A stretch of 64,000 nucleotides of DNA from Dendrobates tinctorius (taxonomy: Eukaryota): positions 12,090,001 to 12,154,000 of the forward strand of contig NW_027361803.1 in the NCBI RefSeq assembly GCF_039654945.1, read 5' to 3'. Under the pieces are notes generated by a model, which searched no databases, was not told the DNA's origin, and was given only the letters and a program-made list of their open reading frames with translations. Shown in pieces: positions 7,493 to 63,076 of the stretch; position 1 is the stretch's first letter; every line of letters starts with the position of its first letter. The translations under genes were made by a program, and so were the position numbers.

Positions 7493-9692
7493 GGTCCTGG
7501 TTGGGACGGGGGATAAAACACGTGGTGTTATATCACAGAGGTGGTGCTTATAATCTGTGTTTTCCAAGTGGTCTAGGCATAACGTGTGTGCGAAGTTGCT
7601 AGGGGGGTTACCGAAAATGTACGATGACTAGGGTTAGCTTAAGGGAGGGTTGGATGGGAGGAGGATAGGCTAAGTTATTGTCTGTTTATTGGAAATACGA
7701 TTTAATATATGAAACTATGCATTGTTTATGAAAATTTGAAATAAAGTTTAAAAAAAAAAATCAGGATTTGCTTGGAATTGGACGCTGCATACAGCTGCAG
7801 CGTTCAATCCGGAGCATCCTGATGTTACAGCATAGTGGAGAGGATTTTATGAAATCCCGTCTCCACTATGCATACAAAGACGCGGGTGATGCTCCGCCTC
7901 TGCAAGATAAATAGCCTAGTCTATGGATAGGATGCGGTGATTCCACATGTGTTCAATGAACACATGCGTTATCACCGCGCGCAAAAAAGGGGGCATCGCT
8001 TTGGACGAAGTGGGCTTTCCTCTGCGTCCAAAGTACTGCGCAGCGTAGAAACATAGCTACACAGGCAAAGCACTGATTATATATCTCAGTCACATAGATA
8101 AATATAAATATCTGTATCTATCTATCTAGAGAGAAATGTTTCCTTTGAAAACTGGAAATGACGGAGAATTACTCTATGTAAAAGCTCATGTTAAACTCGC
8201 ATTGCAATCGGATGTCAGTCGGATACTAGGTGATAAAAATCGCATAGTACTTGCGAAAAAATTGCATGACACTCGTCTCACTTTTTTGGACCGATATCAG
8301 ACCGTTTTTTTTTTTATGGCGATGGGTTTTATGAGCCTTTAGTGTTTTTTTTTTTTTGCTGTCGGTGTTTCACTTCCATGTGCAGGCCGTGTGACACGTA
8401 CCGACGCCTGTGAAGAAGCAGTACAGTTCATGCTGTTTCCAGGCGCCGGCTGCTGAAGGCAGCTCTCATCATTATCGCTTCCCTCCCTGAGATCAGTGCA
8501 ACCAGGAGAAAATGATGGAAGTTGTATTCCGCAGCAGCTGTGTCCCTCCTGTGTAAAATAAAGAATTAAATAAAAAAAAAAAATATATAACGTGGGATTC
8601 CCAGACTGTACCGCTTCTTCCCAGGTGCCGGTATGTGTCACCCTTGTGTCATCAGTGTTCAGAACGCATTTTGTCCATGCTGCTGATAAAAAACTGACAT
8701 GTCTGCACGGTTTTCAAAAATCTGACTTGTGGACACCACCATTGAATACAATGGGTGTGTGTATGTCCATATTTGCGGCCCTTAAAAAACAGCTACATAT
8801 GAACGCAAAAAAACGGATGTGTGAAGGGGGCCTTGCCATTATTTTCTTTCCTGGCAGGAGGAGTTGTCAGAGGGGTGCTGGCAGTGAGGGACATCAGAAT
8901 CCTGAGACTGCAGGGGGGTAGAGATGAGTGGATGGATTCACGGGACTCTGGTCCAGCGTCCAGGTCAGTGCTCCCTGACAGCTTGGCGGGAGGCTGCGAA
9001 TGTCTAACCTTCTGGCGTCCCTGGTGCAACGTCATCTGTGCCTCCGGCTCATCTCTAATTGGGACCTCTGGATGATTTTTTGTTTCTTCATTCACAGTCG
9101 GAGCAGCCAGAACTTTCTCATCCTTATGTAGTGTCACTATATGACATCCGGCTTTTTGGTGTCTGTAAGACCGTGTTCACACGTTGCATAGATACTGTGT
9201 GTAACGTACCCGCTTCTCAGCACTTGACTTGGGGTTGCGCCTGCAAGGGTTAATCTGTCTCCTCTCACTCAGTCCAGCATTCAACCTCTGTTCTATGCTA
9301 CAGTTGGAGCATAAATCACACCCCGACACAGACCACGCACCCTGCGGCATACACCACTCACCGAACACACGGGCGATGAGTCCCGGAAATATTACTACTA
9401 TGTGCCAATCACCAGGAGCTCACACTCTAAGGCTATGGATTCTTTTGAGCATACGAGGTTCAGACTTCTTAAAGTTTTAAGCTTTAATATAAAAGGTACA
9501 GTGCTTACAATAAAAAGGATATAAAAATGGAAATAAGAAATGACATACAAATATGCAAAAACAGTGATAAAATAAAAGGGAGAAAACTTACAGAAATATT
9601 GAACTTTGCAGTCTGGTACTCTGTCCCCGAGGGAGTGGGGAATATGAAATGGAGCACATCAGCTAGGCTGCCCCTTGCTGTGAACAGGTTTC

Positions 9693-10356
9693 TGTCAGGA
9701 ACACCGCACTGCACTTGCTCACTGAGCCAGTGCGAGTGTCCTGAGTACAAAGACAGTACTCAAAGATACCTGTGGAGCGGGGCAGCAGCAGTGACGATGC
9801 GTGCTTCAGAGTATCAGGACCTGAAGCACATGACTGCTGGGGGCGTGGCCTAAGCTCCACAGAGCCAGGAGCTGCAGGGAAACTCCTAGAAAGGTAACTA
9901 CGGGACAATGTTACCAAGGGGCATAGACAGAGACAGAAACCAGACGAAGCCAGGGTCAAAGCACCAGATAGCAATACAGTACCATGGGGTTAAGACAGAA
10001 AGGATAGTCAGGACGTAGCAATAGGTCAGAAAACCAGAACGGGCAATAGACGGTACAATAGGGACAAACTGTAACGGAGTAACGATAGCCAAGCCAGGAG
10101 GTCAGAACTGGAGAAGACAGTAGTACCAAAGCGAGAGACGGAGTACAGAGTGAGGGAACAGGCCGGGTCATACACGGGAAGCAAACAAGCAATGCAGAAT
10201 ACACGCACACCAGGGGTCAGACACACCAGAACAACAGTATAGCTGACAGAGAACCCTGGTAAAGAGTGAGTATAAATACCCCTCCCAGATCCAGAAAGAG
10301 GTCACGAACACTTAACCCTGTGAGTGCAGGGCAAGAACCCTGTTCAAACCATGACA
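9693..10356 (-). repeat. 3' LTR of element A
   Basis: TGTCAGG...CATGACA. By eye, about 8 substitutions and one 2-bp indel versus 17324-17985. Confidence 0.93.
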
Positions 10357-11235
10357 GTACCCCCCTCTTAATGGGGGGCCACTGGACCCCCAGGCTTGTC
10401 TGGGTATCTGGCGTGGAAAGCCCGCACCAGACGATCGGCATGCACCGAACTGGCCGGAACCCATGACTGATCCTCCAGAGAGTACCCCTTCCAGTGTATC
10501 AGATACTGGAGTCTCCGGCGCACCCACCGGGAGTCAACAATGCGCCCTACTTCATACTCCAGCTGCCCCTCTACCAGCACTGGCGGAGCATTTTGTCAGG
10601 AACACCGCACTGCACTTGCTCACTGAGCCAGGGCGTGTGTCCTGAGTACAAAGACTGTGCACAAAGATACCTGCGGAGCGAGCAGCAGTGGTGACAATGC
10701 ATGCTCCAGGACCTGAATCATGTGACTGCTGGGGGCGTGGCCTAAGCTCCACAGAGCTAGGAGCTGCAGGGAAACTCCTAGAAGGGTAACTACAGGACAA
10801 TGTTACCAAGGAGCATAGACAGAGACAGACACCAGATCAAGCCGGGTCAAAGCACGAGATAGCAGGACAGTACCAAAGGGATTAGACAGAAAGAATAGTC
10901 AGGACGTAGCAATAGATCAGAAAACCAGAACAGGTATTAGACGGTACAATAGGGGTAAACTGTAACGGAGTAACGATAGCCAAGCCAGGAGGTCAGAACC
11001 AGAAAAGACAATGGTACCAAAAACGAGAGACGGAGTACAGAGTGAAGGAACAAGCCCGGTCATACACGGGAAGCAAACAAACAATGCAGAGTACACACAC
11101 ACCAGGGGTCAGACACACCAGAACAACAGTATAACTGACAGAGAATGCCAGTATGGAGTGAGCATAAATACCCCTCCCAGATCCAAAGAGAGGCCGGCAA
11201 TGTTAACCCTGTCAGAACAGGACATTAACCATGTC

Positions 11236-14200
11236 CTAACCATGACAGTACCCCCCTCTTAATGGGGGGGCCACCGGACCCCCAGGTTTCTCAGGGTACC
11301 TGGCATGAAAAGCCCGCACCAGTCGATCAGCGTGCACCGAACTGGCCGGAACCCACGATCGATCCTCAACGGAATATCCCTTCCAATGGATAAGGTACTG
11401 AAGTCCCCGGCGCACCCACCGCGAATCAATGATGCGCCCTACCTCGTACTCCAGTTGACCCTCTACCAACACTGGTGGAGCCACGGATGAGGCATCTTCT
11501 CTAACTGTCCCCACAGGTTTTAATAGGGACCTGTGGAAGACGTTAGAGATTTTGAAGGAGGTGGGCAACTGTAATCTGTATGCCACCGGGTTGATCACCT
11601 CTACAATCTTGTATGGGCCAATAAATTTGGGGCCCAACTTCATAGAGGGTATTTTAAGTTTGATGTTACGAGTGGACAACCAGACTTTTTCCCCCACTGT
11701 CAACGCATGAACCACCCCCCTCCTCCTGTCTGCAAAATGTTTGAACTTCTTCTGGTCTTTGGAGATGTTCCCCTGTACCTCCTTCCAGAGGGTTTTTAAT
11801 TGTTGTACCATCCCCTCGGCACCAGGGCAATCCGAATCCATACGGGAAAATTTCCCAAACTGCGGAACAAACCCATAATTGACCAGAAAGGGAGGCTTTC
11901 CGGTAGACTGATTAACCCGACAGTTGAATGCAAATTCTGCCATGGGCAATACCTCACACCAGTCTTCCTGTCTGGAGGAGGCCAAGCATCTCAGAATCTG
12001 CTCCAATGACTGGTTGGTGCGTTCCGTTTGTCCGTTAGATTCCGGGTGATAGGCAGAGGAGAATGACAACGTGACCCCCAACTTCATACAAAACGCTCTC
12101 CAAAACCTGGCCACAAATTGCACACCCCTGTCCGACACCACGTTCACAGGCACTCCATGCAGTCGAACAATGTGCTGTATAAACAAACGAGCCAAGGTTT
12201 CAGCAGATGGTAACGCAGGTAATGGCACAAAGTGGGCTTGCTTAGAAAATCTATCAACCACTACCCATACCACTGAGTTGCCCTTGGAAGGTGGAAGGTT
12301 AGTGATAAAGTCCATGGACAGGTGTGTCCATGGTTTATCCGGAATTGGCAAAGGCACCAATTCCCCGGCCGGCCGGACCTGAGAGCTTTTAGAGCGCGCG
12401 CACACCCCACAAGTATTCACAAACCTTTTTATATCAGTACCCATAGAGGGCCACCAAAAACCCCTAGCTACTGCCCCCCCGGGTAGCTGCAATACCAGGG
12501 TGTGCACTTAACAGAGAGTCATGAAATTCTTGAAGGAGTGTGGGACGGAATTGTTCGGGTACAAACAATTTACCTGGGGGTTTATTCCTGGGAGCTTGTG
12601 CTTGTGCTTCCAGAATCTCTCTCTGTAACTCAGAGGAGATTTCGGCTACAACCACTCCCGGTTGAAGAATGGAGGAAGGAGGTTCTGGAGGGGACACAGA
12701 ATCAAAACTTCGGGATAAGGCATCTGCCTTTACATTTTTAGACCCTGGTCGGAACGTGATGGTAAATTGAAATCGAGAAAAAAAAAGTGCCCACCGAGCC
12801 TCTCTGGGGGTCAATCTCTTAGCAGACTCGATATAGGCCAGGTTTTTATGATCAGTGACGACCGTAATGGGATGAGCGGCCCCCTCCAAAAAATGCCTCC
12901 ATTCTTCAAAGGCCAATTTAACTGCTAACAGTTCCCTGTTACCGACATCATAGTTTCTCTCGGCCGACGAGAACTTCTTAGAGAAAAAGGCACAGGGTTT
13001 GAGGTTAGTCAGGGTAGAAGGGCCCTGTGACAATACTGCCCCCACCCCCGAAGCGTCGACCTCGACGATAAAAGGTCTTGACGAATCGGGTTGTACCAAC
13101 ACAGGGGCTGTAGTAAAACACTTCTTTAATGCCAGGAAGGAATTTTTTGCGGCCACAGACCAACTTTTTACATCTGCCCCTTTAAGAGTGAGGTCCGTCA
13201 AGGGTTTTACCACCTGCGAGAACCCTTTAATGAACTTCCTATAATAATTAGCGAAGCCCAGAAATCGCTGCAACCCCTTCAGGTCATGAGGCTGCACCCA
13301 ATCTGTAATGGCCTGAACCTTCCCTGGATCCATGCGGAATCCCTCCCCGGATACAATTACACCCAGAAAAGACAGTTCTTGCATAAAAAATGAGCACTTC
13401 TCCAGCTTAGCATACAAATGGTTCTCCCGGAGTCTCATAAGCACCGTACGCAGATGATGCAAGTGTGACTGACTGTCCTCAGAGTTAATCAAGATGTCAT
13501 CCAGGTAAATGACTACATAACGTCCAATCAAGTCAGAAAAAACAACATTAATAAAGTTCTGAAAAACCGCAGGAGCATTAGTGAGGCCGAAGGGCATAAC
13601 CAGGTTTTCAAACAGCCCCTCAGTTGTCAGGAACGCTGTTTTCCATTCGTCCCCCTCCCGGATCCTTATAAGGTTATAAGCCCCTCATAGATCGAGCTTA
13701 GAAAACCATTTGGCCCCCGTGAGTTGATTGCATAGATCAGGAATCAACGGGAGAGGGTACGTGTTCTTAACAGTAATTTTGTTCAGTTCTCGAAAGTCGA
13801 GGCACGGTCGCAACCCACCATCTTTTTTCTTTACAAATAAAAACCCCGCTGCCACGGGTGAGACCGAGGGCCGAATATGCCCCTTGCGAAGGCTTTCTTT
13901 AATGTACTCTTTCATAGCTTGGCGCTCAGGCCCGGACAAATTAAACAAACGAGCCTTGGGTAATTTGGCTCCAGGTACTAAATCGATAACACAATCATAT
14001 GGTCTATGTGGTGGGAGCGCCTCGGCCTCGCTTTCGGAAAACACATCTTTAAGGTCTCTCAGGTACTCCGGAATACCCTCCAGACCGACAGATGACACAG
14101 ATACAGATTTTATCGGATTGACAAAAGGAACCGGGTTACAACACAGACCATTATCATTACATCCCCAACGGGTGATCTCCCCCTTCACCCAATCAATAAG

Positions 14201-14600
14201 AGGATAGTGGCGTTGCAACCAGGGCATTCCCAATACCAGTCCTGCAGGCAGATTATTCATAATGAAACAACTTAAATTTTCCACATGAGTGGAACCCACT
14301 TTCATAGAAAAAAGTTCAGACATAAAACAAATTCCATCCCGGGTAAGAGGGGATGAATCCACAGCCACAATTTTAACAGGGTCTTTTAACCTGACTGTCC
14401 CTATCTTATTAAGAGTCACAACTTGGGCATCAATCAGATTAATGGAGGAACCACAGTCAACAAAGGCGGTGGTCATAACAGGACTGCCAGCAATTTCCAA
14501 TTCAACCTGGAGGACCATTTTTATACGTGAGAAAAAAAATGTACCTGGGAGTCTGGACAACCTCCTCGATTGTTGCCCAGACTCAGTCGTTTCTCTGAAG
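11236..14600 (-). pseudogene. Pol of element B (protease, RT, RNase H, integrase, chromodomain) with one premature stop and one frameshift
   Basis: Protease FVDCGS; [28 protein letters not shown]; RNase H VDAS, ELLAV, TDHKNL; integrase [18 protein letters not shown]; chromodomain YEVGRIIDSR...YLIHWKGY. In-frame TGA at 13685-13687 and a frameshift in the C-run near 12475. Confidence 0.92.
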
Positions 14601-15477
14601 GTTTCTCTGAAGAAGGGCAGGAGGGACAATTCCTTTTCCAATGTCCAGAGGCTCCACAGTAAAAACATAGTAGGTTGTCTCTGCGGTGCCTTCTCTCTTT
14701 CTCCTTAACCGAGACTGACCCAACGTTCATGGGCTCAGATACGGGTGAAGTGTCACACAATTTGGGGTACAAGGGAGACTCTTGTTGCATCATTCCTCTA
14801 GCACGGAGTCTCCGGTCCATACGGACCGCCTGCATCATGGCGTCCTCCAGGGTATCAGGAGGCGGATGTAATGCCAGAGCGTCCTGCAGACGGTCAGAAA
14901 GGCCCCTGCGAAACAACCCCCTCAGGGCGGCGTCATTCCAGGATACTTCGGCGATCCAACGTCTAAACTCTGAGCAGAACCATTCAGCAGAGTGCTTTCC
15001 CTGTGTCACACTCATCACCATATCCTCTGCCAGACGCACTCTATCAGGCTCATCATAAATGTGCCCCAGAGCCTCAAAGAACAAGTTCACTGACATACGT
15101 TCAGGAGCAGAGGAAGACAGAGAGAAAGCCCATGCTTGCGGAGCCCCCCGAAGTAGGGAAATAATGACCCCCACCCTCTGAAACTCATCCCCGGAGGAGC
15201 AGGGCCTTAGAGAAAAAAAAAGCTTGCATCCTTCTCTGAAAGACCTGAACTCCTTTTTATCCCCTGAGAAGGGATCGGGCAATTTGACTGGAGATTCGGG
15301 GGACGCTAATGACACATCCCTAACCCCAGAACTAGAAGCCCCTGCATCGACAGCCCCCTGCACAGTAACCACCAACTGTTGCTGGGTATGGGCCATCGTG
15401 CGCTGTTCCACATTGAGTTTATGGAACATTTGGGTCAGGTGCTTGACCTGATCAGCCAAGGCTTGTATGGGATCCAT
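14521..15477 (-). CDS. Gag of element B
   Basis: Starts [10 protein letters not shown]; capsid-like LPDPFSGD; zinc knuckle [14 protein letters not shown]. Confidence 0.85.
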
Positions 15478-17323
15478 GAGGATAACACACACTTTTTTTT
15501 TTTTTTTTCCTTCAGAGGAAAAAAAACTGAAACGGTCAGTTATAATGTCAGGAACACCGCACTGCACTTGCTCACTGAGCCAGGGCGTGTGTCCTGAGTA
15601 CAACGACTGTGCACAAAGATACCTGCGGAGCGAGCAGCAGTGGTGACAATGCATGCTCCAGGACCTGAATCACGTGACTGCTGGGGGCGTGGCCTAAGCT
15701 CCACAGAGCTAGGAGCTGCAGGGAAACTCCTAGAAGGGTAACTACAGGACAATGTTACCAAGGAGCATAGACAGAGACAGACACCAGATCAAGCCGGGTC
15801 AAAGCACGAGATAGCAGGACAGTACCAAAGGGATTAGACAGAAAGAATAGTCAGGACGTAGCAATAGATCAGAAAACCAGAACAGGTATTAGACGGTACA
15901 ATAGGGGTAAACTGTAACGGAGTAACGATAGCCAAGCCAGGAGCTCAGAACCAGAAAAGACAATGGTACCAAAAACGAGAGACGGAGTACAGAGTGAAGG
16001 AACAAGCCGGGTCATACACGGGAAGCAAACAAACAATGCAGAGTACACACACACCAGGGGTCAGACACACCAGAACAACAGTATAACTGACAGAGAATGC
16101 CAGTATGGAGTGAGCATAAATACCCCTCCCAGATCCAAAGAGAGGCCGGCAATGTTAACCCTGTCAGAACAGGACATTAACCATGTCCTAACCATGACAC
16201 ATTTGATGAGGGATCCTCTCTCACCGTCCCCACAGGCTTTAACAGGGACCTGTGGAAGACATTAGAAATTTTAAAGGAGGTGGGCACCTGCAGTCGGTAG
16301 GCTACTGGGTTAACAACCTCCACAACTTTGTATGGGCCAATAAACTTGGGGCCCAGCTTTACAGAAGGTATCTTAAGCTTGATATTGCGGGTGGATAGCC
16401 ACACCTTCTCCCCTACTGCAAATGCTGGACCTGGCCCCCTCCTCCTGTCAGCAAACTGCTTATAGTTTTCCTGGGCCTTGGAAATATTCCTCTGAACCTC
16501 CCTCCAAAGAATTCTAAGACGTAGTGTCACATCCTCAGCACCAGGACAACCTGAATCCATACTGGAAAACTCTCCAAAATGTGGGTTAAAGCCATAGTTG
16601 ACCTGAAAAGGAGACTTCCCAGTAGACTGACTCACACGACCGTTGAATGCAAACTCTGCCATGGGCAATACCTCACACCAGTCCTCCTGCCTGGAAGAGG
16701 CCAAGCATCTCAGAATCTGCTCCAACGACTGGTTTGTGCGCTCCGTCTGTCCATTAGACTCTGGGAGGGGTATTTATACTCACTCTTTACCATATCCTCT
16801 GCCAGACGCACTCTATCAGGCTCATCATAAATGTGCCCCAGAGCCTCAAAGAACAAATTCACAGACATGCGTTCAGGAGCAGAGGAAGAGAGAGAGAAAA
16901 CCCATGCCTGTGGAGCCCCCCCGAAGTAGGGAAATGACGACCCCCACCCTCTGGAACTCATCCCCGGAAGAGCGGGGCCTCAGAGAAAAAAACAGCTTGC
17001 ATCCTTCTCTGTAAGACCTGAACTCCTTTTTATCCCCTGAGAAAAGGTCTGGCAATTTGACCGGAGATTCTGGGAATGCCAATGACACATCTCTATCCCC
17101 AGCACAAGAATCCCCTGTAGCTGCAGCCCCCTGTACCGTATCCACCAACTGTTGCTGGGTCTGGGCCATCGTGCGCTGTTCCATATTAACTTTGTGGAAC
17201 ATTTGGGTCAGGTGCTTGACCTGACCAGCCAAAGCTTGTATGGGATCCATGAGGATAACACACTTTTTTTTTTTTTTTTCCCTCAGAGGGGGAAAAAAAA
17301 AAAACTGAAATGGTCAGCTATAA

Positions 17324-17985
17324 TGTCAGGAACACCGCACTGCACTTGCTCACTGAGCCAGTGCGGGTGTCCTGAGTACAAAGACAGTACTCAAAGATAC
17401 CTGTGGAGCAGGGCAGCAGAAGTGACGATGCGTGCTTCAGAGTATCAGGACCTGAAGCACATGACTGCTGGGGGCGTGGCCTAAGCTCCACAGATCTAGG
17501 AGCTGCAGGGAAACTCCTAGAAAGGTAACTACGGGACAATGTTACCAAGGGGCATAGACAGAGACAGAAACCAGACGAAGCCAGGGTCAAAGCACCAGAT
17601 AGCAATACAGTACCATGGGGTTAAGACAGAAAGGATAGTCAGGACGTAGCAATAGGTCAGAAAACCAGAACGGGCAATAGACGGTACAATAGGGACAAAC
17701 TAACGGAGTAACGATAGCCAAGCCAGGAGGTCAGAACTGGAGAAGACAGTAGTACCAAAGCGAGAGACGGAGTACAGAGTGAGGGAACAGGCCGGGTCAT
17801 ACACGGGAAGCAAACAAGCAACGCAGAATACACGCACACCAGGGGTCAGACACACCAGAACAACAGTATAGCTGACAGAGAACCCTTGTAAAGAGTGAGT
17901 ATAAATACCCCTCCCACATCCAGAAAGAGGTCACGAACACTTAACCCTGTGAGTGCAGGGCAAGAACCCTGTTCAAACCATGACA
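17324..17985 (-). repeat. 5' LTR of element A
   Basis: Direct repeat of 9693-10356. TATA-like TATTTATA on the minus strand at 17900-17907. Confidence 0.93.
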
Positions 17986-19137
17986 GTTTCTATGTGTAAA
18001 GGCCTAATTTATAGAGTAACCTGGAGATTAGATTTCTACATCAGCCTCTCATGTTAATTTTCTAATTCTTGGTTTGTGACTGTGACTGTTTTGAACAGCT
18101 GTCATGTACCCGCAATAAGCGCAGGTAGAATCGCGATCCACCTGCGCCTATTAACCCGTTAAACGCCACTGTCAAACGCTGACAGCAGCATTTAACCGGT
18201 GCTTCCGGCTGCCGGGACGGAAATGAGCGCATCGCCGACGCCGTCACGTGATCGGGGGGTCAGCGATGCGTTGGCATAACAACCAGAGGTCTCCTAGACC
18301 AAAGATGTACGGGAGCCAGAACTAGTGCCACAGCAGAACTAGGGCGTCTGCTCCGATGGCGGATGGATCGCGCGATCGGGCAATGAACCGAGGAACCTTG
18401 TCGTTTAGTCTTGAGGCCATGAGATCCACATCCGGAGTCCCCCAACAATGGCAAATCTGCTGAAAGACTTCGGGTGAAGAGACCACTCTCCTGAGGCAAG
18501 GCCCTGGCGACTGAGAAAATCTGCCGCCCAGGTCTCTACGCCCGGGATGTGGATCGCTGAGATGGGCGAATGGCTGGTCTCGGCCCAATGGAGGATGTGA
18601 CTCACTTCATGCATGGCCATCCTGCTCCGAGTACCCCACTGACGGTTGATATGCGCCACAGCCGTGGCATTGTCGGATTGGATCCTGATGGGGTGACCTG
18701 CGAGGAGATGGTGGAAATTCAGTAGGGCTAATCTGATCGCTCGTATCTCCAAGATGTTGATGGGGAGACGTGATTTCCGAGTTGACCAACGACCCTGTGC
18801 TGTGTGGTGATGAAAAACCGCACCCCATCCCAGAAGACTTGCGTCGGTGGTCACCACTGACCATCGTACTGGGAGAAAAGACTTTCCTTGACTCAGGGAG
18901 GATTTCGGTGTCCACCACTTGAGGGCTTGTCTGACCCGCAGAGACAGAAGGAACCAACGGTCCAGGGAGAATGGGTTTTTGTCCCAAGATAACAGCAACG
19001 CATGTTGTAAGGGACGGAGAAGGAACTGTGTGAATGGAACTGCTTCCATTGCTGCTACCATCTTTCCGGGAACTCTCATGCTGAAACGAACGGAGTGAGA
19101 AACCGGTCGCGAAAGAGTCCACGCTGCCTCTTGTAAG

Positions 19138-32982: not shown

Positions 32983-35900
32983 TCATACGCGTCCTTTTTG
33001 GCTCAGTCTTTGGCGTTTGAACTTTTTGTCTTTCCGTTTCTTGTTGGGTTTGAGGACCGGTGGCTGCGTCTCAATAACTTGAGGTTTCTTTTCAGCCTTG
33101 GTGGTGAACACGTCAGCCGTGGGGTCGTGAGGAACGACCACCACCCCTTCAGTCTTCTTCATTTTCTGCAGTTCTTTCACTTGTTGCTTCTCCCGAATCT
33201 TTGCCGCCGTTTCTAATCGGATAATGCGCCGATGCTGAAAGAGAAGTCGTCAGCAAATTGTGCAGGAAAGTCACATGAAAAAGATCAACGTAATGGACAA
33301 AGACCAGCATAGTCATGTCCATAAAAACTGCAGGGGGACGTACCATATTCGGGGACTGGTAGTAAGGGTTCTCGTACAGGGTCGGACCTCCAAAGCTGCC
33401 TTTGAAAATCTTGATGAGATTCAGCACAAATCGCGGTCCGATCTCCACCAGAGATGCGTCCTCCTCTATGATCTGCGGAAACAGGACGAGATGCAGAATT
33501 ACAAGACGAATCCAAAGCCAAGGATCGATCAATGGTCACACACTGTGTGCAGGCAACACTTCGGCACCGTCAGCTGCATGTCTACAGCGCTGGCGCATAA
33601 AGCGGTGCCAATCTGAACTGTGCACTAGGAGGAGCTGGAAAAACTGCACCGGCAGACAGCGAGGTGGTCTTTATGTCAGCTCGGTGAAGGACGCCAAGGT
33701 CGGCCAATCTTCATTTATTTCATCCCCCACTTTAAGCCATTTATTTAAGGGTTAAATATTTATAGATTTCGATAGATCAGACTAATTTCTGGGTGGCCTT
33801 CACAGGAGTACCATGTATGGTGGACTTCCGCAAACTCCCGGCTGCTGTGGCCTCCCGTGGTCGTGTTGCGAGGGGGAGGTTGGGTGATGTGCACCTGAAC
33901 AGACCTCCCGCTTATGTGCTGCAGCATTGAAATGGTTAAACCGCAGCGACTGGCACAAGCCTCTGATCACTGATTTTAGATATTTAGCACAGCTGGACCC
34001 TTCTTGTGTGCAGCGGGGGTCAGCTCCAGGATGCAGGAGGATTAGACGGCGAAACTCATTTGTGACTCGTCCTGCGAGTTTATGTCACCTATATGGAGGT
34101 GCAAGAATTTAAAGAGAAGAATAAGGACGGACCTGATAATTCCTGAACCAGATCCTCTTATCTGCTACGGAGAAGGTGAAGACGTGGTCCACGAACGGCT
34201 GACTCTTGGGGTGATATCTCGGGGTTCCAAAAATCTGCAATCGAGAGACCGAGATATTACGTGAAGAAATGGCGCCGAGAACCGAAACGCACGGACGCAG
34301 AAGTCGCCGTTACCTGAATGAAGAGCTCCTTCAGCAACGAGAGGTACGGATCCTGATCAAAAGCCTGCGGGGGGAGGAGAGGGGGTGTGTAAGCTGCAGC
34401 AAAGGATGCTGGGACTTGTAGTTCTATACCAAATACATTAGTTTTTTTTTTTTTTTAAATACGAACCGGATCAAAGGAGAGCAGCGGACGGGAGCCCTTC
34501 AGGCAGTTTCCAGTCATCTTCAGCTCTGCCAGCGTGTGAACTCGAAAAAGGGAAGAAGAGATTTTTTTTTTTTAAACCTGCATCGGATCCACAGAAAATG
34601 ACAGTATACAGCATAAAGCATTTTCATTGCTAGTCCTGGGCGCAATGTGAGGTCGGTGTGGACAGCAGACGACTACATACACGTGTGCACATCTGTCTGA
34701 TGTCATCAGATACGGACAGAGCTGCACGGTCCTGGCCACGTGGATTTGGCCTCAGAAAATTATAAAATGTGAAAAGTTTTTTTTGTTATTTTTTATGCAT
34801 TTACAATATTTTATCACTTTTATCACCCTCAAATTTGGGGGAAAATGGGGGTAAGTCTTATAATCTGAATGTAGCTTACCAGCTGCGGTGGAGCGGGGTC
34901 CCAGGGTCGCTGCTACAGGAAGCTTCTGGCGGCGGCAGGAGTGGGGTGATGCTATGGACCCCAGGCTGGTAGAAGGGGGTGTTCGGCGGTGCAAGGGCTC
35001 CGCCGACATTTTGTGAAAGCCCAGCACTCCTGTACTTCCCATAAATGCTTGCAGAGCCCCCGCACCGCTGAATTCCACCTCCTATCAGCATCGCCCCACT
35101 CCGACCAGCCTGGGACTTGCAGCATCTCCTACCACCGCCGCAAGTAGCGACCCTCCCACCTGGGACCCCGATCAACCGCCGCCCAGCTAAGCTACCATAA
35201 AAGCAACTAAGACGCACCATCATTTTAGCTTTTAAAAAAAAAAAAAAAGTTTTATTTTTCTCCCTGACATTTGGTGTGCGTTTTATAATTCAGTGCGCCT
35301 TATAATCCACAAAACATGGTATTTTAAAAAGATCTTTAAATATTGCATGAACATTAGAACATATGGTTATCTGATGCTTCCTGATTTCTGCAGCTTACGG
35401 AACTTTGCTGTATAGACTGGGACAGAATAAGCGGAGTCATTTCAATACAAGTAGAAGTTTCGCTTTTCGGTATAGACTGGGGACAGATGAACAGTCTTTA
35501 CATTACAATTGGTAGGTGCAGGGAATTAATAAAAATATCTTGAAATCCTGCATGTCTCGCTCAAAACTAAACACACAATTAGCTGATGCTTCTTGGTTTC
35601 TGCAGCTCACTTAGCTTTGCTGTATAGACTGGGACAGGATGGGGTCATTTCATTACAATTAGAAGGTGGAGGGAGTAAATGACAGCTCTACTGTGCTGCC
35701 TGTAGCATCAGATCTAATATATTGTGCCGCACATTCTGCAAGAAATAGTCCGCACTACGGCTACAAGAGACCCTCGCCCTATGACATCCACATGCTATAA
35801 TAGAGTGCTCAGAAAAGGGACCGATGTTTTAAGTTAAAAAAAATGAAATTAAAAGACAAGATATCAGACACTTTTGGATCAGGAGTAACTTTGTATCTAG

Positions 35901-38900
35901 GACCCGGTCAGGACCAATCATCCCTCCACTTCCCATCCTTCTCACTTATTTGTTACTTACTGTTCTGGACCAAGAATTTAGCCGATGGTCCCTCGGGGGC
36001 GTTTGATATCCTAAAATATAAAAAAAAAGTATTGAAGCCGTCACTAGAGGGATTATCTGAGGAGAGCAGCCGGGTAGTCAGCGAGGGGTCACTCACCACA
36101 TGTACAGATCCTGCTTCTTCTTCGCCTCGAAATAAATACATTTGTTGCAGTTTTTCATCTCACAAACCTGCGAGATGAGAAAACCGTTAGAGAGCGACGA
36201 GGTGACGGCGCCATTTATTCAGCGCCAGCACAAAACCAGCAACACCAACGGGGGTCGGAGAAGATTACACGGAGGCAACAGGCGCTCAGCTGCTCTTAAA
36301 AGGGGGAGCAGAAGCCGAGGAGGAAGCCTCGCTTATGGGTATGGTCACAAAATATCATCCACACGCTGCGTAAAAAAATCTGAGCAAAGACGTCGAGTTG
36401 CGCTGCAGGTTTTGATTTCACGCTTTGAGGGACACAGGAAAAAAAAATCCTAGAAAATCAGCATGAAACTCGTGCACTTTTTTCCCGCTGATTAGTAGCC
36501 GATTTTTTCAGCTCAGTTGCCATGCGACGTGGACGCACCCTCGAAGTGTCCACAGCGGCCGTCACATACCTCATTAATGACGAACAGTTTATCTTTCCGG
36601 TCCATTTTTGTATCTACAAATATAAAAAGTGAAAGAAGGTGAAAAAGAATGAGAATGATGAAAACTTTCACACGAGCCCTGTGACGAAGCCTCCACGTTC
36701 CCATCATAGTCTGTTCTGCATCGCTAGGAGCTGCCGTTACGTCCTGATTTTTGGGGATTAGATCTAAGGACCCCACAGACCACCACAACTTCCTGCAGTG
36801 GGGGGGCAGTAATGTAGGGTCCCTGCACCATCGTAGGGTATTGTTATGGTGTGTGACCAGATCTCTACTATTCCTATCCTTCCATTCCCAGTTGCCCCTT
36901 TATCTTCCGGTCCATCATAAAGCCTGGAGGAAGCGGCGCGTTACGAGGAGCGTCGCAGCGGCACTTACCGGCTTTGGCGTGCGGCATTAACGTTTTCAAG
37001 TCGTGCATTAAATGTCGTGTTCGGAAATTAATTCCACGGGAAGAAAATATCAGCACCCGCTCCTTGTTCATCCATTTGCCCTGCAACAACAAGATGGCGA
37101 CACATAAGATCCAGGACGTGTGCAGGTACCTGGCGCCATTAATGTAGGGGCACGGGACCACCTTCACCTGGAGGGCGCTATATCAGCCATCGCTCCAGGA
37201 CCTCTGCTTCCTGCTCCTCACCCCGAGGCTGATCAGTGGCCGGCGGTTTTGCTTCCTAATATCCCCCAGAATAATGACAGGAGTTTAGGGCGATCGTTCC
37301 CAGCAGATACATACCGGAGGCTGCGCGCTCCCCAGACCTCGTCCTCAGGGCAGAGGCGGCCATTTATTATTCTATTTGGACTTTTTCTTGTCTAGCTTTT
37401 GGATGTTTTTCACCTGCTTTTTAAATTTGCGCCTATTTAAAAGTAATTTCATATGTGTTTGCTCCAAAAATGATGAAACGGGCCTGGTATACACATGTAT
37501 GACCCTGTGCTGGAGTATACAGGCTGGGGAAAAGACGAGTATACAGGATATACATGGGATGATGCATAAACCACACTCCAGGGGTCGGCCCCGGAGCGCC
37601 AGGGTATAGGGCGGTATACGGGGTGCTCCAGTCTACCACCAGCTCTATTGGGGGCCGTGCACACGGCGCCTTTTTCTCGTGAGAATCTGGAGGTTTTGGA
37701 GAGGACGACGCTTCAGGAAATGCCGATTATTATTTCCCCTCCATAGCGGGGCCGGGGAGCTGGAGTCAGTATAAAACGTATCGACTCCTAAAATACGGAA
37801 TCCTGATGTCAATCCTCTAAGAACAGAGACTTAAAGGAATAGTTCTGTCTCCAGGATCCAATCCTGATCGGCATTACAGTCATGGCCAAAAGTTTTGAGA
37901 ATGACACAAATATTAATTTTTACAAAGTCTACTGCTTCATTTTTTCTAATGGCAATTTGCATATACTCCAGAATGTTATAAAGAGTGATCAGCTTAACAG
38001 CAAATACTTGCAAAGTCAATATTTGCCTAGAAAATGAACTTTATCCCCCAAAACACATTTCAACATCATTGCAGCCCTGCCTTAAAAGGACCAGCTAACA
38101 TCGTTTCAGTGATTGCTCCATTAACACAGGTGTGGGTGTTGATGAGGACAGGGCTGGAGATCAATCTGTCATGATTAAGTAAGAATGACACCACTGGACA
38201 CTTTAAAAGGAGGCTGGTGCTTGGCATCATTGTTTCTCTTCTGTTAACCATGGTTATCTCTAAAGAAACACGTGCAGTCATCATTGCACTGCACAAAAAC
38301 GGCCTAACAGGGAAGAGTATCGCAGCTACAAAGATTACGCCTCAGTCAACAATCTATCGCATCATCAAGAACTTCAAGGAGAGAGGTTCCCTTGTTGCCA
38401 AAAAGGCTCCAGGGCGCCCAAGAAAGACCAGCAAGCGCCAGGACCGTCTCTTAAAAGTGTTTCAGCTGCGGGATTGGGCTACCAGCAGTGCAGAGCTTGC
38501 TCAGGAATGGCAGCAGGCAGGTGTGAGTGCATCTGCACGCACTGTGAGGCGGAGACTCTTGGAGCAAGGCCTGGTCTCAAGGAGGGCAACAAAGAAGCCT
38601 CTTCTCTCCAGAAAAAACATCATGGACAGACTGATATTCTGCAAGAGGTACAGGGAGTGGACTGCTGAGGACTGGGGTAAAGTCAGTTTCACTGATGAAT
38701 CCCCTTTTCGATTGTTTGGGACATCTGGAAAATGGCTTATTCGGAGAAGACCAGGTGAGCGCTACCACCAGTCTTGTCTCATGCCAACTGTCAAGCATCC
38801 TGAAACCATTCATGTGTGGGGTGGCTTCTCAGCCAAGGGAATGGGCTCTCTCTCAGTCTTGCCTAAAAACACAGCCATGAATAAAGAATGGTACCAGAAT

Positions 38901-40313
38901 GTCCTCCAAGAGCAACTTCTCCCAACCGTCCAAGAGCAGTTTGGCGATCAACAATGCCTTTTTCAACATGATGGAGCACCTTGCCATAAAGCAAAGGTGA
39001 TAACTAAATGGCTCAGGGAACAAAACATAGAGACTTTGGGACCATGGCCTGGAAACTCCCCAGATCTTAATCCCATTGAGAACTTGTGGTCAATCATCAA
39101 GAGACGGGTGGACAAACAAAAACCTTCAAATTCAGACAAAATAAAAGCATTGATTTTGCAAGAATGGACTGCTATCAGTCAGGATTTCATCCAGAAGTTG
39201 ATTGAGAGCATGCCAGGGAGAATTGCTGAGGTCCTGAAGAAGAAGGGTCAACACTGCAAATATTGACTTGCTGCATTAACTCATTCTAACTGTCAATATA
39301 ACCTTTTGCTACTCATAATATGATTGAAATTATATTTCTGTATGTGATAAAAACATCTGACAAACACACATAAAAACCAGAGGCCAGCAGATCATGTGAA
39401 AATATAATATTTGTGTCATTCTCAAAACTTTTGGCCATGACTGTAGGTGTAATAATAATAATATTAGCAAATACGTCATATTAGAAATGTGGTCTAGTTC
39501 TTCTGATTCGCTACGTCTCTTCCCTCGTGTGCAGGGCATTAGGTATCTATGGTTATGGTCACTGATGATCTCTCTCGCACGCTGAATACGGCCGATTCAT
39601 GCAGATGGGAGCCGGCCATAGAGGAAGACCGGTCCGAGTGCGGTGCAAGGTGTTATCACACAGCACTCGTCCGTATTCCTCTCTAGTGTGACCCCGATCC
39701 AATACATACGACTCGTTATACTATTGCGGTAATGACCTTATAACATGGCGGCATCTTCTCCGGCGCTCCCGACACTATGGTGTCAATGGAGACGGCGTGA
39801 TCGGTGTAATCGAGGGCACGTCAGGCGGTAAATCAGAGTCACGGCGTCCGTGCGGCTCATCGTGAAGGGGGAAACGCACCGAGGAATAAGCCGGATACAA
39901 GAGGGACTGAAGACGCTGCTGCGATGACCCAGGAGCGGAGTACAGGGGCCGGCGTCACTCCAGCTGTGAGGCCGCACACACCGCTGCCACCGATCACCGG
40001 CTGCACGGTCTGCGCCCAGCTATGTGCGGCGCCTCCTCAGGGATCACATAAAGGCTCCAGTGCAGTAATGGTGACAGGAGGCCCCGGGACCTCCGGCTCT
40101 GACCGTGTGCAGGATTATCATCACGACCACAAGAGCCGGACCAATAACCGCACAATCTACACGCGCTCCTACCTCTGACACCGGCGCCGGGATGGTGAAC
40201 TCGTCCCCTGCTCCGGCCTCATCAGTCTCCGCTTCTTTCTGCTGTAATTTGGGCTTTTTGCTCCGGTTTTCAGACTCCACATTGGAGCCACGTTTTCTCC
40301 GGTACGCCGCCAT
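32983..40313 (-). CDS. BRIX1: Ribosome biogenesis protein BRX1 homolog (341 aa, 10 coding exons)
   Basis: Exons 40313-40173, 37080-36969, 36613-36570, 36167-36097, 36010-35961, 34540-34467, 34364-34314, 34234-34133, 33472-33344, 33234-32983. All GT-AG, 1026 nt in one frame. Brix motifs KERVLIFSSRGINFRTRHLM, GPSAKFLVQN, ELKMTGNCLKGSRP, LVEIGPRFVL. Confidence 0.97.
37877..39443 (+). mobile_element. Tc1/mariner transposon, DD35E type, full length (1567 bp), in BRIX1 intron 1
   Basis: TA TSD at 37875-37876 and 39444-39445; perfect 39-bp TIRs CAGTCATGGCCAAAAGTTTTGAGAATGACACAAATATTA. Confidence 0.96.
38250..39266 (+). CDS. Intact Tc1-family transposase (338 aa, DD35E)
   Basis: ATG at 38250; paired-like HTH, GRPRK, FTDES, FQHDGAP and SPDLNPIENLW; 35 residues between the second D and the E; no stops. 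Confidence 0.93.
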   Translation: MVISKETRAVIIALHKNGLTGKSIAATKITPQSTIYRIIKNFKERGSLVAKKAPGRPRKTSKRQDRLLKVFQLRDWATSSAELAQEWQQAGVSASARTVRRRLLEQGLVSRRATKKPLLSRKNIMDRLIFCKRYREWTAEDWGKVSFTDESPFRLFGTSGKWLIRRRPGERYHQSCLMPTVKHPETIHVWGGFSAKGMGSLSVLPKNTAMNKEWYQNVLQEQLLPTVQEQFGDQQCLFQHDGAPCHKAKVITKWLREQNIETLGPWPGNSPDLNPIENLWSIIKRRVDKQKPSNSDKIKALILQEWTAISQDFIQKLIESMPGRIAEVLKKKGQHCKY

Positions 40314-40340
40314 GTTGCTTGTCTACGCCGGAAGTGTTTG
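40314..40340 (-). promoter_or_regulatory. BRIX1 proximal promoter motifs
   Basis: ETS/GABPA CCGGAAGTG at 40328-40336; YY1-like AACATGGCGGC spanning the ATG; ZNF143-like ACTACAACTCCCAGCATGC further upstream at 41017-41035 (minus strand). Motif matches only. Confidence 0.5.
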
Positions 40341-40376
40341 TCTGTACAGCAGGAAGGAAAAGCTCTATGGTATGTG

Positions 40377-40905
40377 TGCTGCGGCGGAGCGCCCTCTGCT
40401 GGAGACTGCGGGGAGATGTGCGGCGGAGCGCCCTCTGCTGGAGACGTGCGGCGGAGCGCCCTCTGCTGGAGACTGCGGGGAGATGTGCGGCGGAGCGCCC
40501 TCTGCTGGAGACTGCGGGGAGATGTGCGGCGGAGCGCCCTCTGCTGGAGACTGCGGGGAGATGTGCGGCGGAGCGCCCTCTGCTGGAGACTGCGGGGAGA
40601 TGTGCGGCGGAGCGCCCTCTGCTGGAGATGTGCGGCGGAGCGCCCTCTGCTGGAGATGTGCGGCGGAGCGCCCTCTGCTGGAGACTGCGGGGAGACGTGC
40701 GGCGGAGCGCCCTCTGCTGGAGACTGCGGGGAGATGTGCGGCAGAGCGCCCTCTGCTGGAGACTGCGGGGAGATGTGCGGCGGAGAGCCCTCTGCTGGAG
40801 ATTGCGGGGAGATGTGCGGCGGAGCGCCCTCTGCTGGAGACTGCGGGGAGACGTGCGGCGGAGCGCCCTCTGCTGGAGACTGCGGGGAGATGTGCGGCAG
40901 AGACT
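40377..40905. repeat. 39-bp GC-rich minisatellite (with 28-bp variants) immediately upstream of BRIX1
   Basis: Unit TGTGCGGCGGAGCGCCCTCTGCTGGAGACTGCGGGGAGA; followed by (TA)n at 40938-40963. Confidence 0.95.
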
Positions 40906-41518
40906 CCGGCTGGTGATCGCCTCGGACTGGTCGTTTCTATATATATATATATATATATATATAGATAGAGTCATTTAAATGAGTTACAATAATTAGCTGT
41001 AATTACACTGAAGTTGGCATGCTGGGAGTTGTAGTGTCCCGTGGCGGTCGGATGCAGCCGCCGTCCGTCCTGTATTATTCGCTCACTGATGGGATCTAAT
41101 ATTTCATCACCTTAAAGTGAAAAAAAAAAATCCTTTCTGCCTCCAGATCAGACGATGAGAATAGATCCCGGGATCTCCAGTAATCGAGTCCTTGGAAAGT
41201 CATTAGATCGCCTTTCCACAGAGTAAATATCGATGGGGCTGTTCGGCACATATCACTTCAGTGGGGTCCAACACCCTGCAGCCCCACCGACCAGCCAAGC
41301 TGCAGTACCGAGAACAGTCACTACACAGTGTGGCGCTGCACTATTCGTGTCTATGCACCGTGCACATCCAGCCAGAGCCGGAATTAGGGGCAGGCAGCTG
41401 CCTAGGACGTCTGGTGACGCTCCCATCATTCCCCCTCTGCCTCAGCGTGTACCAGCAGGCGAGCTGAGACGCCCTGCAGAAGCCAGAGCAGGGGTGTAGG
41501 AGGAGGAGAGGTAAGCAT

Positions 41519-43351: not shown

Positions 43352-45159
43352 TTAGGAGTCTCCTTCCTGAAGATCCTCATCTGGAGAGCAGTAATACTCC
43401 ACGAAGCAGATCTGGCCGTCCTCGTTCCTGACCATGTACTGCAGAGACAGGAAGCCTCGGCTGTCGGTGCGGATGGACACCTTGCAGGACAGGGCCAGCG
43501 CCTTGGTGGACGGCTTCAGCAGAGAGATCTTATACCTGCGGCAGAAGAGAGAAAACACAACATGTCTGTTTTGGTGGCAGTGGATGTCCTGCGCTGCCGG
43601 TTCTGTCACTGTATAGTGGCCGCTCCCGGTACTGCAGCTCGGCTCTTGTGAATGTGACCTGAGATGCAGTACCGAGAATGGCCACTAGGCAGGCAGCGAA
43701 GGACAAACATCGGCATCAGCTGCGGATTCTTTTGCATGTGCCGCAGGTGAGGAGCGGTGACCGCCGGTGATCCTCGCTCCGCCATCTCACCTGTTGGTCT
43801 GTGTCTGGCTGCAGTGAAACGCTTCTATCAGGTCGGAGTCCTTGGGATAATCCAGGTGGGCGCTGCCGGCGTTCCCGAACGTGGAGAGTCTGCGAGGAGA
43901 ATAACGGATCAGGATCTAATACGGGGGAGGCAGGAAAAACACTTTTTTTTTTTTTTGCAGCATTTTTTAAGGGTCTGACTTTTGCTAGATGGTCCCAGGA
44001 TATCTACATACACCAATGAGCTGAGGGGTTGTTACAATTGCATCCAGTGCAGACAATCCTCTGGGATCACCTCAGGTAGGGCTTGTCCGGAGACATGGTG
44101 ATCTGCAGGAAGTCGCTGCTCATGTCCAGCTCGGAGAACGCCTCTCTCAGCCCCTCCGACTGCAGGATGATCTTATTCACCACGTTGGTGCTGCAGAAAT
44201 CGAAGTCCAGCGTCTCCTCGGGCTCCTGGGTGTGAATCTTACACACCGTCACCACCCCGCCTTCCTCCAGGAATAAGGTCAGGGGGTGGCCGTAGCCCCG
44301 GTAGCCCATCTTCAGGGCAGTGCAGGTGGCTGGAATAAGACAGAGGACATATAGGAAATGCAGCAGATCAGAAGAACCAGGAGGATCAGGATGAACAGCA
44401 CCGAACGTGTCTGACACACCGGAATATAGAGGGGTCTCCGCGTCCCCTCTCTCTACCCTGAGTATAATCACCTGGTACAGCACCGGCCCCAAAAATTGTC
44501 AAGCAGTCGAGGAGGACGGTGAGATTGATGCGAAACACGACAGAATCCTCCCGGACGTTGAATTCCTGGAATATCCCGGCCTGGTGGATAAAGGAGGAAA
44601 AGTCAGTGACACCACGGACAAGACCGCCGGGCGCCGTGTGGCTGCTGCCGGGTGTTGTAAGTCTGCTGGTGGGCGCCAGCCGATGTGTCGTGTGCCTGGA
44701 GTTGGGCGTCATAAGTCTGCCGCCGGGTGTCGTGTGGCTGCCGCCGGGTGTTGTGTGGCTGCCGCCTGCGCTTCTCAAATTCCTCAATGTCTATAAAACC
44801 TCATCTTGCTGTCAGTGAATCAAACACAACTTTCCATTAAGGGACAGAAATCTGAATAGTATCCAGTGTTGCCCGTGCACTGATCTCGCTGCTGGTTTGT
44901 CACAGTGTATCAGTCGTTTTGCTCACTGTCTGGATACAGTAGAGAATAACGCGGCGGCTCCCACCTGTATGAAGGCGTTGGCCTGCAGGCATTTAGCATT
45001 TTCCACCGTGACTTTGAGGCCGTTGCTGGTGGCGAAGCAGGACGCGTGGTCCTTGAAGTGAACGGCCTTCAGGATGTTGGAGAGGTTGCGGACGTTGTCC
45101 AGGCTGCAGGCGAACACGTACTCGTCCTCATCCACCTCCGACTGAGAGAAGAACGACAT
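43352..45159 (-). CDS. RAD1: Cell cycle checkpoint protein RAD1 (9-1-1 clamp subunit; 281 aa, 5 coding exons)
   Basis: Exons 45159-44965, 44580-44472, 44329-44071, 43889-43791, 43535-43352. GT-AG, 846 nt in one frame. Motifs SLDNVRNLSNILKAVHFKD, VENAKCLQANAFIQ, YKISLLKPSTKALALSCKVSIRTD. An acceptor at 45170-45171 implies an upstream non-coding exon. Confidence 0.97.
44626..44766. repeat. Short ~21-bp tandem repeat in a RAD1 intron
   Basis: GCCGCCGGGTGT(C/T)GTGTGGCT-like units. Confidence 0.65.
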
Positions 45160-45213
45160 GGCCGGAGACCTGGACCGAAAGAAGAGAGAAAGTAGTGAAT
45201 ACAGGAGGCGGCG

Positions 45214-47581
45214 CGACACGGGAACCCACCGACCGCAGGCACGGGAACCCACCGACCGCAGGCACGGGCTCCCACCGACCGCAGGCACGGGCTCCCACCG
45301 ACCGCAGGCACGGGCTCCCACCGACCGCAGGCACGGGCTCCCACCGACACGGGAACCCACCGACCGCAGGCACGGGCTCCCACCGACCGCAGGCACGGGC
45401 TCCCACCGACACGGGAACCCACCGACCGCAGGCACGGGCTCCCACCGACCGCAGGCACGGGCTCCCACCGACCGCAGGCACGGGCTCCCACCGACACGGG
45501 AACCCACCGACCGCAGGCACGGGCTCCCACCGACCGCAGGCACGGGCTCCCACCGACCGCAGGCACGGGCTCCCACCGACCGCAGGCACGGGCTCCCACC
45601 GACACGGGCTCCCACCGACCGCAGGCACGGGCTCCCACCGACACGGGAACCCACCGACCGCAGGCACGGGCTCCCACCGACCGCAGGCACGGGCTCCCAC
45701 CGACCGCAGGCACGGGCTCCCACCGACCGCAGGCACGGGCTCCCACCGACCGCAGGCACGGGCTCCCACCGACACGGGAACCCACCGACCGCAGGCACGG
45801 GCTCCCACCGACCGCAGGCACGGGCTCCCACCGACCGCAGGCACGGGCTCCCACCGACACGGGCTCCCACCGACCGCAGGCACGGGCTCCCACCGACACG
45901 GGAACCCACCGACCGCAGGCACGGGCTCCCACCGACCGCAGGCACGGGAACCCACCGACTGCAGGCACGGGCTCCCACCGACCGCAGGCACGGGCTCCCA
46001 CCGACCGCAGGCACGGGAACCCACCGACTGCAGGCACGGGCTCCCACCGACACGGGAACCCACCGACCGCAGGCACGGGCTCCCACCGACTGCAGGCACG
46101 GGCTCCCACCGACACGGGAACCCACCGACCGCAGGCACGGGCTCCCACCGACACGGGCTCCCACCGACCGCAGGCACGGGCTCCCACCGACCGCAGGCTC
46201 CCACCGACACGGGAACCCACCGACCGCAGGCTCCCACCGACACGGGCTCCCACCGACCGCAGGCACGGGCTCCCACCGACCGCAGGCACGGGCTCCCACC
46301 GACCGCAGGCACGGGCTCCCACCGACACGGGCTCCCACCGACCGCAGGCACGGGCTCCCACCGACACGGGAACCCACCGACCGCAGGCACGGGCTCCCAC
46401 CGACCGCAGGCACGGGCTCCCACCGACACGGGCTCCCACCAACCGCAGGCACGGGCTCCCACCGACACGGGAACCCACCGACCGCAGGCACGGGCTCCCA
46501 CCGACCGCAGGCACGGGCTCCCACCGACACGGGAACCCACCGACCGCAGGCACGGGCTCCCACCGACCGCAGGCACGGGCTCCCACCGACCGCAGGCACG
46601 GGCTCCCACCGACACGGGCTCCCACCGACCGCAGGCACGGGCTCCCACCGACACGGGCACCCACCGACCGCAGGCACGGGCTCCCACCGACCGCAGGCAC
46701 GGGCTCCCACCGACCGCAGGCACGGGCTCCCACCGACCGCAGGCACGGGCTCCCACCGACCGCAGGCACGGGAACCCACCGACCGCAGGCACGGGAACCC
46801 ACCGACCGCAGGCACGGGAACCCACCGACCGCAGGCACGGGAACCCACCGACCGCAGGCACGGGCTCCCACCGACTGCAGGCACGGGCTCCCACCGACAC
46901 GGGAACCCACCGACCGCAGGCACGGGCTCCCACCGACACGGGAACCCACCGACCGCAGGCACGGGCTCCCACCGACCGCAGGCACGGGAACCCACCGACC
47001 GCAGGCACGGGAACCCACCGACCGCAGGCACGGGAACCCACCGACACGGGAACCCACCGACCGCAGGCTCCCACCGACACGGGAACCCACCGACCGCAGG
47101 CTCCCACCGACACGGGAACCCACCGACCGCAGGCTCCCACCGACACGGGAACCCACCGACCGCAGGCTCCCACCGACACGGGAACCCACCGACCGCAGGC
47201 TCCCACCGACACGGGAACCCACCGACCGCAGGCTCCCACCGACACGGGAACCCACCGACCGCAGGCTCCCACCGACACGGGAACCCACCGACCGCAGGCT
47301 CCCACCGACACGGGAACCCACCGACCGCAGGCTCCCACCGACACGGGAACCCACCGACCGCAGGCTCCCACCGACACGGGAACCCACCGACCGCAGGCTC
47401 CCACCGACACGGGAACCCACCGACCGCAGGCTCCCACCGACACGGGAACCCACCGACCGCAGGCTCCCACCGACACGGGAACCCACCGACCGCAGGCTCC
47501 CACCGACACGGGAACCCACCGACCGCAGGCTCCCACCGACCGCAGGCTCCCACCGACCGCAGGCACGGGCTCCCACCGACC
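45214..47581. repeat. 2.4-kb C-rich minisatellite (23/16-bp modules, with a homogeneous 33-bp block at about 47045-47520) upstream of the RAD1 coding exons
   Basis: Units CCACCGACCGCAGGCACGGGCTC and CCACCGACACGGGAAC. Confidence 0.97.
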
Positions 47582-47819
47582 GTCCCCTGACAATCCGCGG
47601 CTCCGTTCCCCCCCGGCTCCGCTCACTGACAGCGCTGACACCAGAGCCGCCGATCAATAATGGAAAAGAAAAATAACAGAACTCCCTGCACACAGGTCGC
47701 CACTTTCTCCTCTGGTGCAATCTTTTGCGACACTTTGGCCAATCCGTTTCTCGCTTTACGGCTCCACATCGGCGCCCCCTAGACCCCAGTAACAATGTGC
47801 AATAAGTATAAAAGCCAGC

Positions 47820-63008: not shown

Positions 63009-63076
63009 GTAACTGGGGGTCTTATGGATGAACTGCGGCACTGGAGCCGTGTAATAAGCTCGTATATGGCAGATAT

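Follow-up and report, generated by a model that had tools for sequence, protein, structure and literature searches.

Members of the Tf1/sushi group, in yeasts as well as in vertebrates, have been described as priming their own reverse transcription (PMC6317226; PMC4600332; both citing Butler et al., 2001), and the mechanism used by Tf1 has been published (PMC7175516). For Tf2, competence of the RNA for any reverse transcription depends on use of the correct start site in the LTR (PMC5341516). Self-priming has also been predicted from sequence for the Tcn1-clade chromoviruses of fungi and non-seed plants, which group with Tf1/sushi (PMC6317226; PMC7175516). Here we describe a pair of elements from the frog Dendrobates tinctorius whose sequences bear this signature, found in a stretch of 64,000 nucleotides (the window).

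Read on the minus strand, positions 9688-17990 of the window form two LTR retrotransposons, with element B nested inside element A at the site of A's integrase remnant. Two related Gypsy elements had been predicted here; both were confirmed as chromodomain Ty3/Gypsy elements, and the nesting can now be added. The parts of the two elements are listed below.

17324..17985, minus strand: element A 5' LTR, 662 nt, TGTCA...TGACA, 98.8% identical to its 3' copy (alignment)
9693..10356, minus strand: element A 3' LTR, holding a copy of the putative self-primer at 10238-10247
17986-17990 and 9688-9692: element A target duplication GAAAC, 5 bp
16205..17312, minus strand: element A internal remnant (blastn against the internal region of B; Pfam SH3_Tf2-1 on 16177-16725)
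10357..10593, minus strand: final 237 internal nt of element A, resuming beyond the B insertion, 85% identical to the corresponding end of B's internal region (blastn)
10360-10369, minus strand: element A polypurine tract (pattern search)
15546..16199, minus strand: element B 5' LTR, 654 nt, 99.4% identical to its 3' copy
10594..11247, minus strand: element B 3' LTR, holding a copy of the putative self-primer at 11130-11139
16200-16204 and 10589-10593: element B target duplication AAATG, 5 bp
11248..15534, minus strand: element B internal region, with gag at 14521-15477, then protease, RT, RNase H, integrase and chromodomain (ORF list, Pfam)
11251..11260, minus strand: element B polypurine tract AAGAGGGGGG, three bases ahead of the 3' LTR (pattern search)

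We placed the LTR end of element A at 17324, where many contigs diverge exactly. The polypurine tract AAGAGGGGGG precedes the 3' LTR by three bases in A as well as in B. LTRs of the two elements are 88.5% identical to each other, indicating two subfamilies of one family, and the nesting order, with B as the younger, full-length insertion, fits B's higher LTR-pair identity (99.4% vs 98.8%). Both copies in the window are defective. The remnant of A joins the leader and the N-terminal part of gag (its first ~540 nt, down to about 16781) to the C-terminal part of the integrase (16765-16205); the 15 nt in between (16766-16780) match neither of the two and fall within a 29-nt inverted LTR copy. In element B, an in-frame stop at 13685-13687 interrupts the RT, and a frameshift near 12464-12507 disrupts the zinc domain of the integrase (frames from ORF coordinates).

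The inverted LTR copy, exact over its 29 nt (16762-16790), forms the junction of A's internal deletion. It corresponds to LTR positions 70-98 counted from the true start at 17985 (68-96 of the trimmed LTR), overlaps the gag homology by ~10 nt and the integrase homology by ~4 nt, and includes the TATA-like box, seen as a pattern match on the plus strand at 16767-16783. This arrangement looks like the product of template switching during reverse transcription with microhomology. Between primer site and gag ATG, both elements carry a T-run, a short C-rich loop and an A-run (17264-17308 and 15480-15517) that can form a long U:A hairpin; an Rfam match to mir-3613 at this hairpin (E 0.7) was dismissed as chance, and no significant Rfam family was found at the locus. 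Elsewhere in the window, long tandem arrays occupy 40300-41000, 45100-52500, 56700-57500 and 59300-64000, with periods of 23/16, 30, 33, 35, 38, 39 and 61 nt, and G+C climbs to 0.71 around 46-48 kb.

Pfam matches along element B follow the order gag, zinc knuckle, aspartic protease, RT, RNase H, integrase, SH3_Tf2-1 and C-terminal chromodomain, the last being a PF00385 match (E 6.7e-12) that spans residues 354-403 of the integrase piece. The closest solved relative of B's RT-RNase H piece is yeast Ty3 Gag-Pol (E 7e-50). Direct LTRs with TG...CA ends, target duplications of 5 bp, a polypurine tract and the domain order gag-protease-RT-RNase H-integrase place the elements in Ty3/Gypsy (Metaviridae), and the chromodomain at the integrase C-terminus places them among the chromoviruses. 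Judged by these sequence features, A and B are one family of frog chromoviruses. The nearest relatives of gag and integrase come from anurans (Engystomops, Ranitomeya, Xenopus, Leptobrachium and Ascaphus), with fish next, and the nearest named integrase relatives are annotated as 'Transposon Tf2-6 polyprotein' or 'Gypsy retrotransposon integrase-like'. These names and the SH3_Tf2-1 match are the sole indications from protein that would group the family with Tf1/sushi. The family is very abundant among the contigs of a DNA run.

A primer site for the 3' end of a tRNA must start with TGG. No TGG was present in the first 20 nt after the 5' LTR of either element when the sequence was read, so a tRNA 3' end cannot pair there. 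Each element instead carries, one base (T) beyond the LTR end ...TGACA, a site with an exact complement in its own LTR.

17313..17322, minus strand: element A primer-binding site TATAGCTGAC, separated from the LTR end by one base
17867..17876, minus strand: element A putative self-primer GTCAGCTATA in the 5' LTR, exactly complementary to the primer site and predicted to form the first 10 nt of the transcript
17900..17907, minus strand: element A TATA-like box TATTTATA, starting 31 nt upstream of the first paired base
15535..15544, minus strand: element B primer-binding site TATAACTGAC (read directly; pattern search)
16082..16091, minus strand: element B putative self-primer GTCAGTTATA in the 5' LTR, with a T in place of the C found in A, in agreement with the altered base of B's primer site
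16115..16122, minus strand: element B TATA-like box TATTTATG, starting 31 nt upstream of the first paired base

The partner in the 3' LTR reads the same as that in the 5' LTR, GTCAGCTATA at 10238-10247 (minus strand) in element A and GTCAGTTATA at 11130-11139 in element B. The duplex is exactly 10 bp in both elements, with flanking bases unpaired, and its first paired G lies 31 nt downstream of the start of the TATA-like box (17907 in A, 16122 in B). In element A the putative self-primer begins at a pyrimidine-purine step (T|G). A single compensatory change, G:C in A against A:U in B, distinguishes the two, and each element carries its form in its two LTRs as well as at its primer site. The original prediction had given the primer-site and 5' LTR positions, the spacing and the missing TGG-type tRNA primer site for both elements, and the shared change with its preserved 10-bp duplex for B, and all of it was upheld. 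Both elements show two features of the Tf1/sushi group, namely the lack of a primer site for a tRNA 3' end and an LTR-adjacent site complementary to an LTR stretch downstream of the promoter.

The pattern TATARCTGAC had six matches in the window, where 0.12 were expected by chance; two of them are the primer sites and the other four are the copies in the LTRs. Out of 5000 dinucleotide shuffles of the LTR per element, 12 for A and 7 for B contained, at any position, a complement to the primer site of at least 10 nt (P about 0.002 per element).

A host molecule could nevertheless act as primer, be it a tRNA, a tRNA half or another small RNA, with the LTR match being incidental, since priming by tRNA halves exists in some Copia elements (PMC6317226). 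Against this stand the absence of the TGG start that a tRNA 3' end requires and the finding, described below, that the primer site differs between related families and its LTR partner changes along with it each time. A tRNA scan found no tRNA genes in the window or in six related loci. An internal tRNA fragment is excluded only indirectly by these data, and overall we consider a host-derived primer very improbable.

For comparison, loci around relatives of gag and integrase were fetched and LTRs were located in them. The LTR site and the primer site of each element are given below.

Ranitomeya imitator (L002): LTR site GTCAGCTATA, primer site TATAGCTGAC, the form found in A
Engystomops pustulosus (L001): LTR site GCTGGCTATT, primer site AATAGCCAGC
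Hemibagrus guttatus, a catfish (L003): LTR site GCGAAGTATC, primer site GATACTTCGC
Assembly GCA_977066275.1 (L008): LTR site GTCCGGTCT, primer site AGACCGGAC, 9 bp paired, then one mismatch
Environmental eukaryote (L005 and L009, two copies out of one sample): LTR site ACTCTCGTCAA, primer site TTGACGAGAGT, 11 bp paired, 2-nt spacer

Five further lineages have kept the pairing with differing sequences. Among the six elements from vertebrates, 59 of the 60 cells form standard pairs and 7 of the 10 columns have changed on both sides. The primer site stands one base after ...ACA in 6/6 of these elements, and in every element compared the LTR site starts 28-32 nt downstream of a TATA-like box. RNA polymerase II usually starts on a purine that follows a pyrimidine; the first base of the LTR site is such a purine in every element, and it is G in all six from vertebrates. 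Such covariation across families is expected of a self-primer and not of a shared host primer. The Ranitomeya relative, with a gag about 57% identical and an LTR otherwise very different, carries the form found in A, so that G:C is probably the older state. Three other loci (L004, L006 and L007) showed no LTR pair and hence had no definable primer site; for further copies in the same genome, the window's gag protein had no entry in the assembly index, and the positions that vary between A and B were not among the contig differences listed for four runs (contigs only).

These comparisons bear directly on whether the match could be a chance inverted repeat. A 10-bp match taken alone leaves some room for this, with a shuffle P of only about 0.002 for A and B and of 0.0004-0.003 per element across the compared set. 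Its recurrence in five further lineages, where the sequences differ and the spacing from a TATA-like box and the offset from the LTR end are kept, effectively refutes chance as an explanation.

Several features of the compared loci were observed in passing. In Ranitomeya imitator, the 5' LTR (L002:30800-31180 vs 35466-35975) has lost the TATA-like box and the self-primer stretch, while the 3' LTR retains both. The element of Engystomops pustulosus contains a 3-kb tandem duplication (L001:8614-14671), each unit of which opens with the last ~115 nt of the LTR, followed by the primer site and gag. In the catfish element (L003:8640-8760), the likely start of gag (ATGGACCCGG...) falls within the LTR, ~40 nt ahead of its end, and the gag frame is open across the primer site, which would therefore be coding; the 3' LTR copy is without this ATG. 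A clear AATAAA lies ~50 nt before the LTR end at L008:3380-3400. This signal has been reported for 'Sushi' LTRs (PMC3601003), and none was seen on reading the LTRs of A and B.

Taken together, these results suggest that the A/B family most likely starts reverse transcription as Tf1 does, and we regard it as a good candidate for self-priming. Transcription would start ~31 nt past the TATA-like box in the 5' LTR, yielding an RNA that begins with GUCAGCUAUA in element A and GUCAGUUAUA in element B. The spacing from the TATA-like box and the pyrimidine-purine step indirectly support the partner stretch as the 5' end of the transcript. No run recorded as RNA was found to contain the stretch. The LTR is covered by contigs from possible RNA runs, which is no proof of transcription, and one of them stops ~2 nt short of 17876, contig ends being no evidence of a start site. 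The RNA is predicted to fold back over ~550 nt of R-U5, bringing its first 10 bases into a duplex with the primer site, which lies a single base past the LTR. By analogy with Tf1, the element's RNase H would then cut behind the duplex, probably after base 10, and the freed 3' end would prime minus-strand DNA. In the standard scheme, the plus strand would later copy the primer and rebuild the primer site, and a change in the primer would thereby be carried into the primer site.

Copying of the primer into the primer site would account for the simultaneous change of both sides between A and B. The original prediction had taken the covariation as a sign of selection on the pairing. The covariation itself was borne out, within the window and beyond it, in that primer sequences differ among the six vertebrate elements and pairing is kept (59/60 cells paired, 7/10 columns changed on both sides); selection need not be its sole cause, since primer copying could also produce it. 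The covariation may thus reflect this copying and not only selection on two independent mutations, and a coupling of primer to primer site would support self-priming as much as selection does. We tentatively suggest, giving it slightly less than even weight, that the difference between A and B is a naturally occurring trace of primer-site rewriting templated by the primer, whereby a changed LTR self-primer would have primed across one mismatch and then been copied into the primer site during plus-strand synthesis. If this is true, primer and primer site would drift together without two independent mutations. Elements that prime themselves would then be free to alter the primer sequence, and this would account for the separate 10-mer of each related family.

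Folding of the R-U5-primer site region, proposed with the original prediction as a check, gave a divided answer. The folded RNA began at the first paired base and stopped shortly beyond the primer site, and at this length (~570 nt) predictions are weak evidence either way. The probability of the duplex between primer and primer site was 0.99 for element A, 0.88 for the Engystomops element (L001), 0.96 for the catfish element (L003) and 0.91 for one environmental copy (L005), but 0.001 for element B. In element A, the duplex was present in the minimum-energy and centroid structures, and the predicted fold contained a further 4-bp extension, UGUU with GACA of the LTR end. In element B, an alternative fold was predicted to be 4.7 kcal/mol better than the enforced duplex, probably because GUCAG can also pair with CUGAC at the LTR end and the A:U pair weakens the duplex.

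The fold of B is of interest for a further explanation, in which the complementarity is functional and serves to circularise the leader for packaging, dimerisation or strand transfer, with another molecule acting as primer. Long-range pairings with U5 occur in retroviral leaders, the span of 550 nt is long, and the fold predicted for B disfavours the duplex, all of which would suit such a role. However, the paired site lies exactly where minus-strand synthesis must begin for the observed LTR end in 6/6 vertebrate elements, and no alternative TGG... primer site follows the LTR. Moreover, the related Tf1 primes by the same pairing (PMC7175516). We therefore regard a purely architectural role as unlikely, though less so than a host-derived primer. 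Self-priming as in Tf1, which the original prediction had put forward for this family, gains support from the position of the primer site, from a partner placed where a transcript driven by the TATA-like box would be expected to begin, and from the pairing kept in the five further lineages.

The locus provides a clean natural example, with covariation within one genome as well as across frogs and fish, of vertebrate chromoviruses keeping a self-primer signature of the Tf1 type. The elements share a fixed geometry: ~30 nt separate the TATA-like box from a primer whose first base is a purine, and a single base separates the LTR from the primer site. This geometry should be useful for annotating LTR elements without a tRNA primer site, and the family is a possible starting point for the study of self-priming in a vertebrate.

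Tf1 and Tf2 of Schizosaccharomyces pombe and Tj1 of S. japonicus are, like A and B, Ty3/Gypsy elements with a chromodomain integrase and no tRNA primer site, and the start of their transcript is complementary to a primer site just after the 5' LTR (PMC7175516; PMC4600332; PMC5341516). Elements A and B show the same complementarity, with a predicted transcript start. Unlike the three yeast elements, they pair over 10 bases, have a span of ~550 nt between primer and primer site, reside in a frog and are described here from their sequence. With the Tcn1 clade they have in common a self-priming predicted from sequence, whereas hosts and sequences differ; the two environmental copies (L005 and L009) may be closer to Tcn1-clade chromoviruses than to the frog family. 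The vertebrate Tf1/sushi elements, sushi-ichi and its relatives, are chromoviruses for which self-priming was proposed from the same kind of complementarity as in A and B (PMC4600332; PMC6317226). Since self-priming of the Tf1/sushi group, vertebrates included, has already been published, A and B represent a new example and not a new mechanism, and they leave the known mechanism unchanged.
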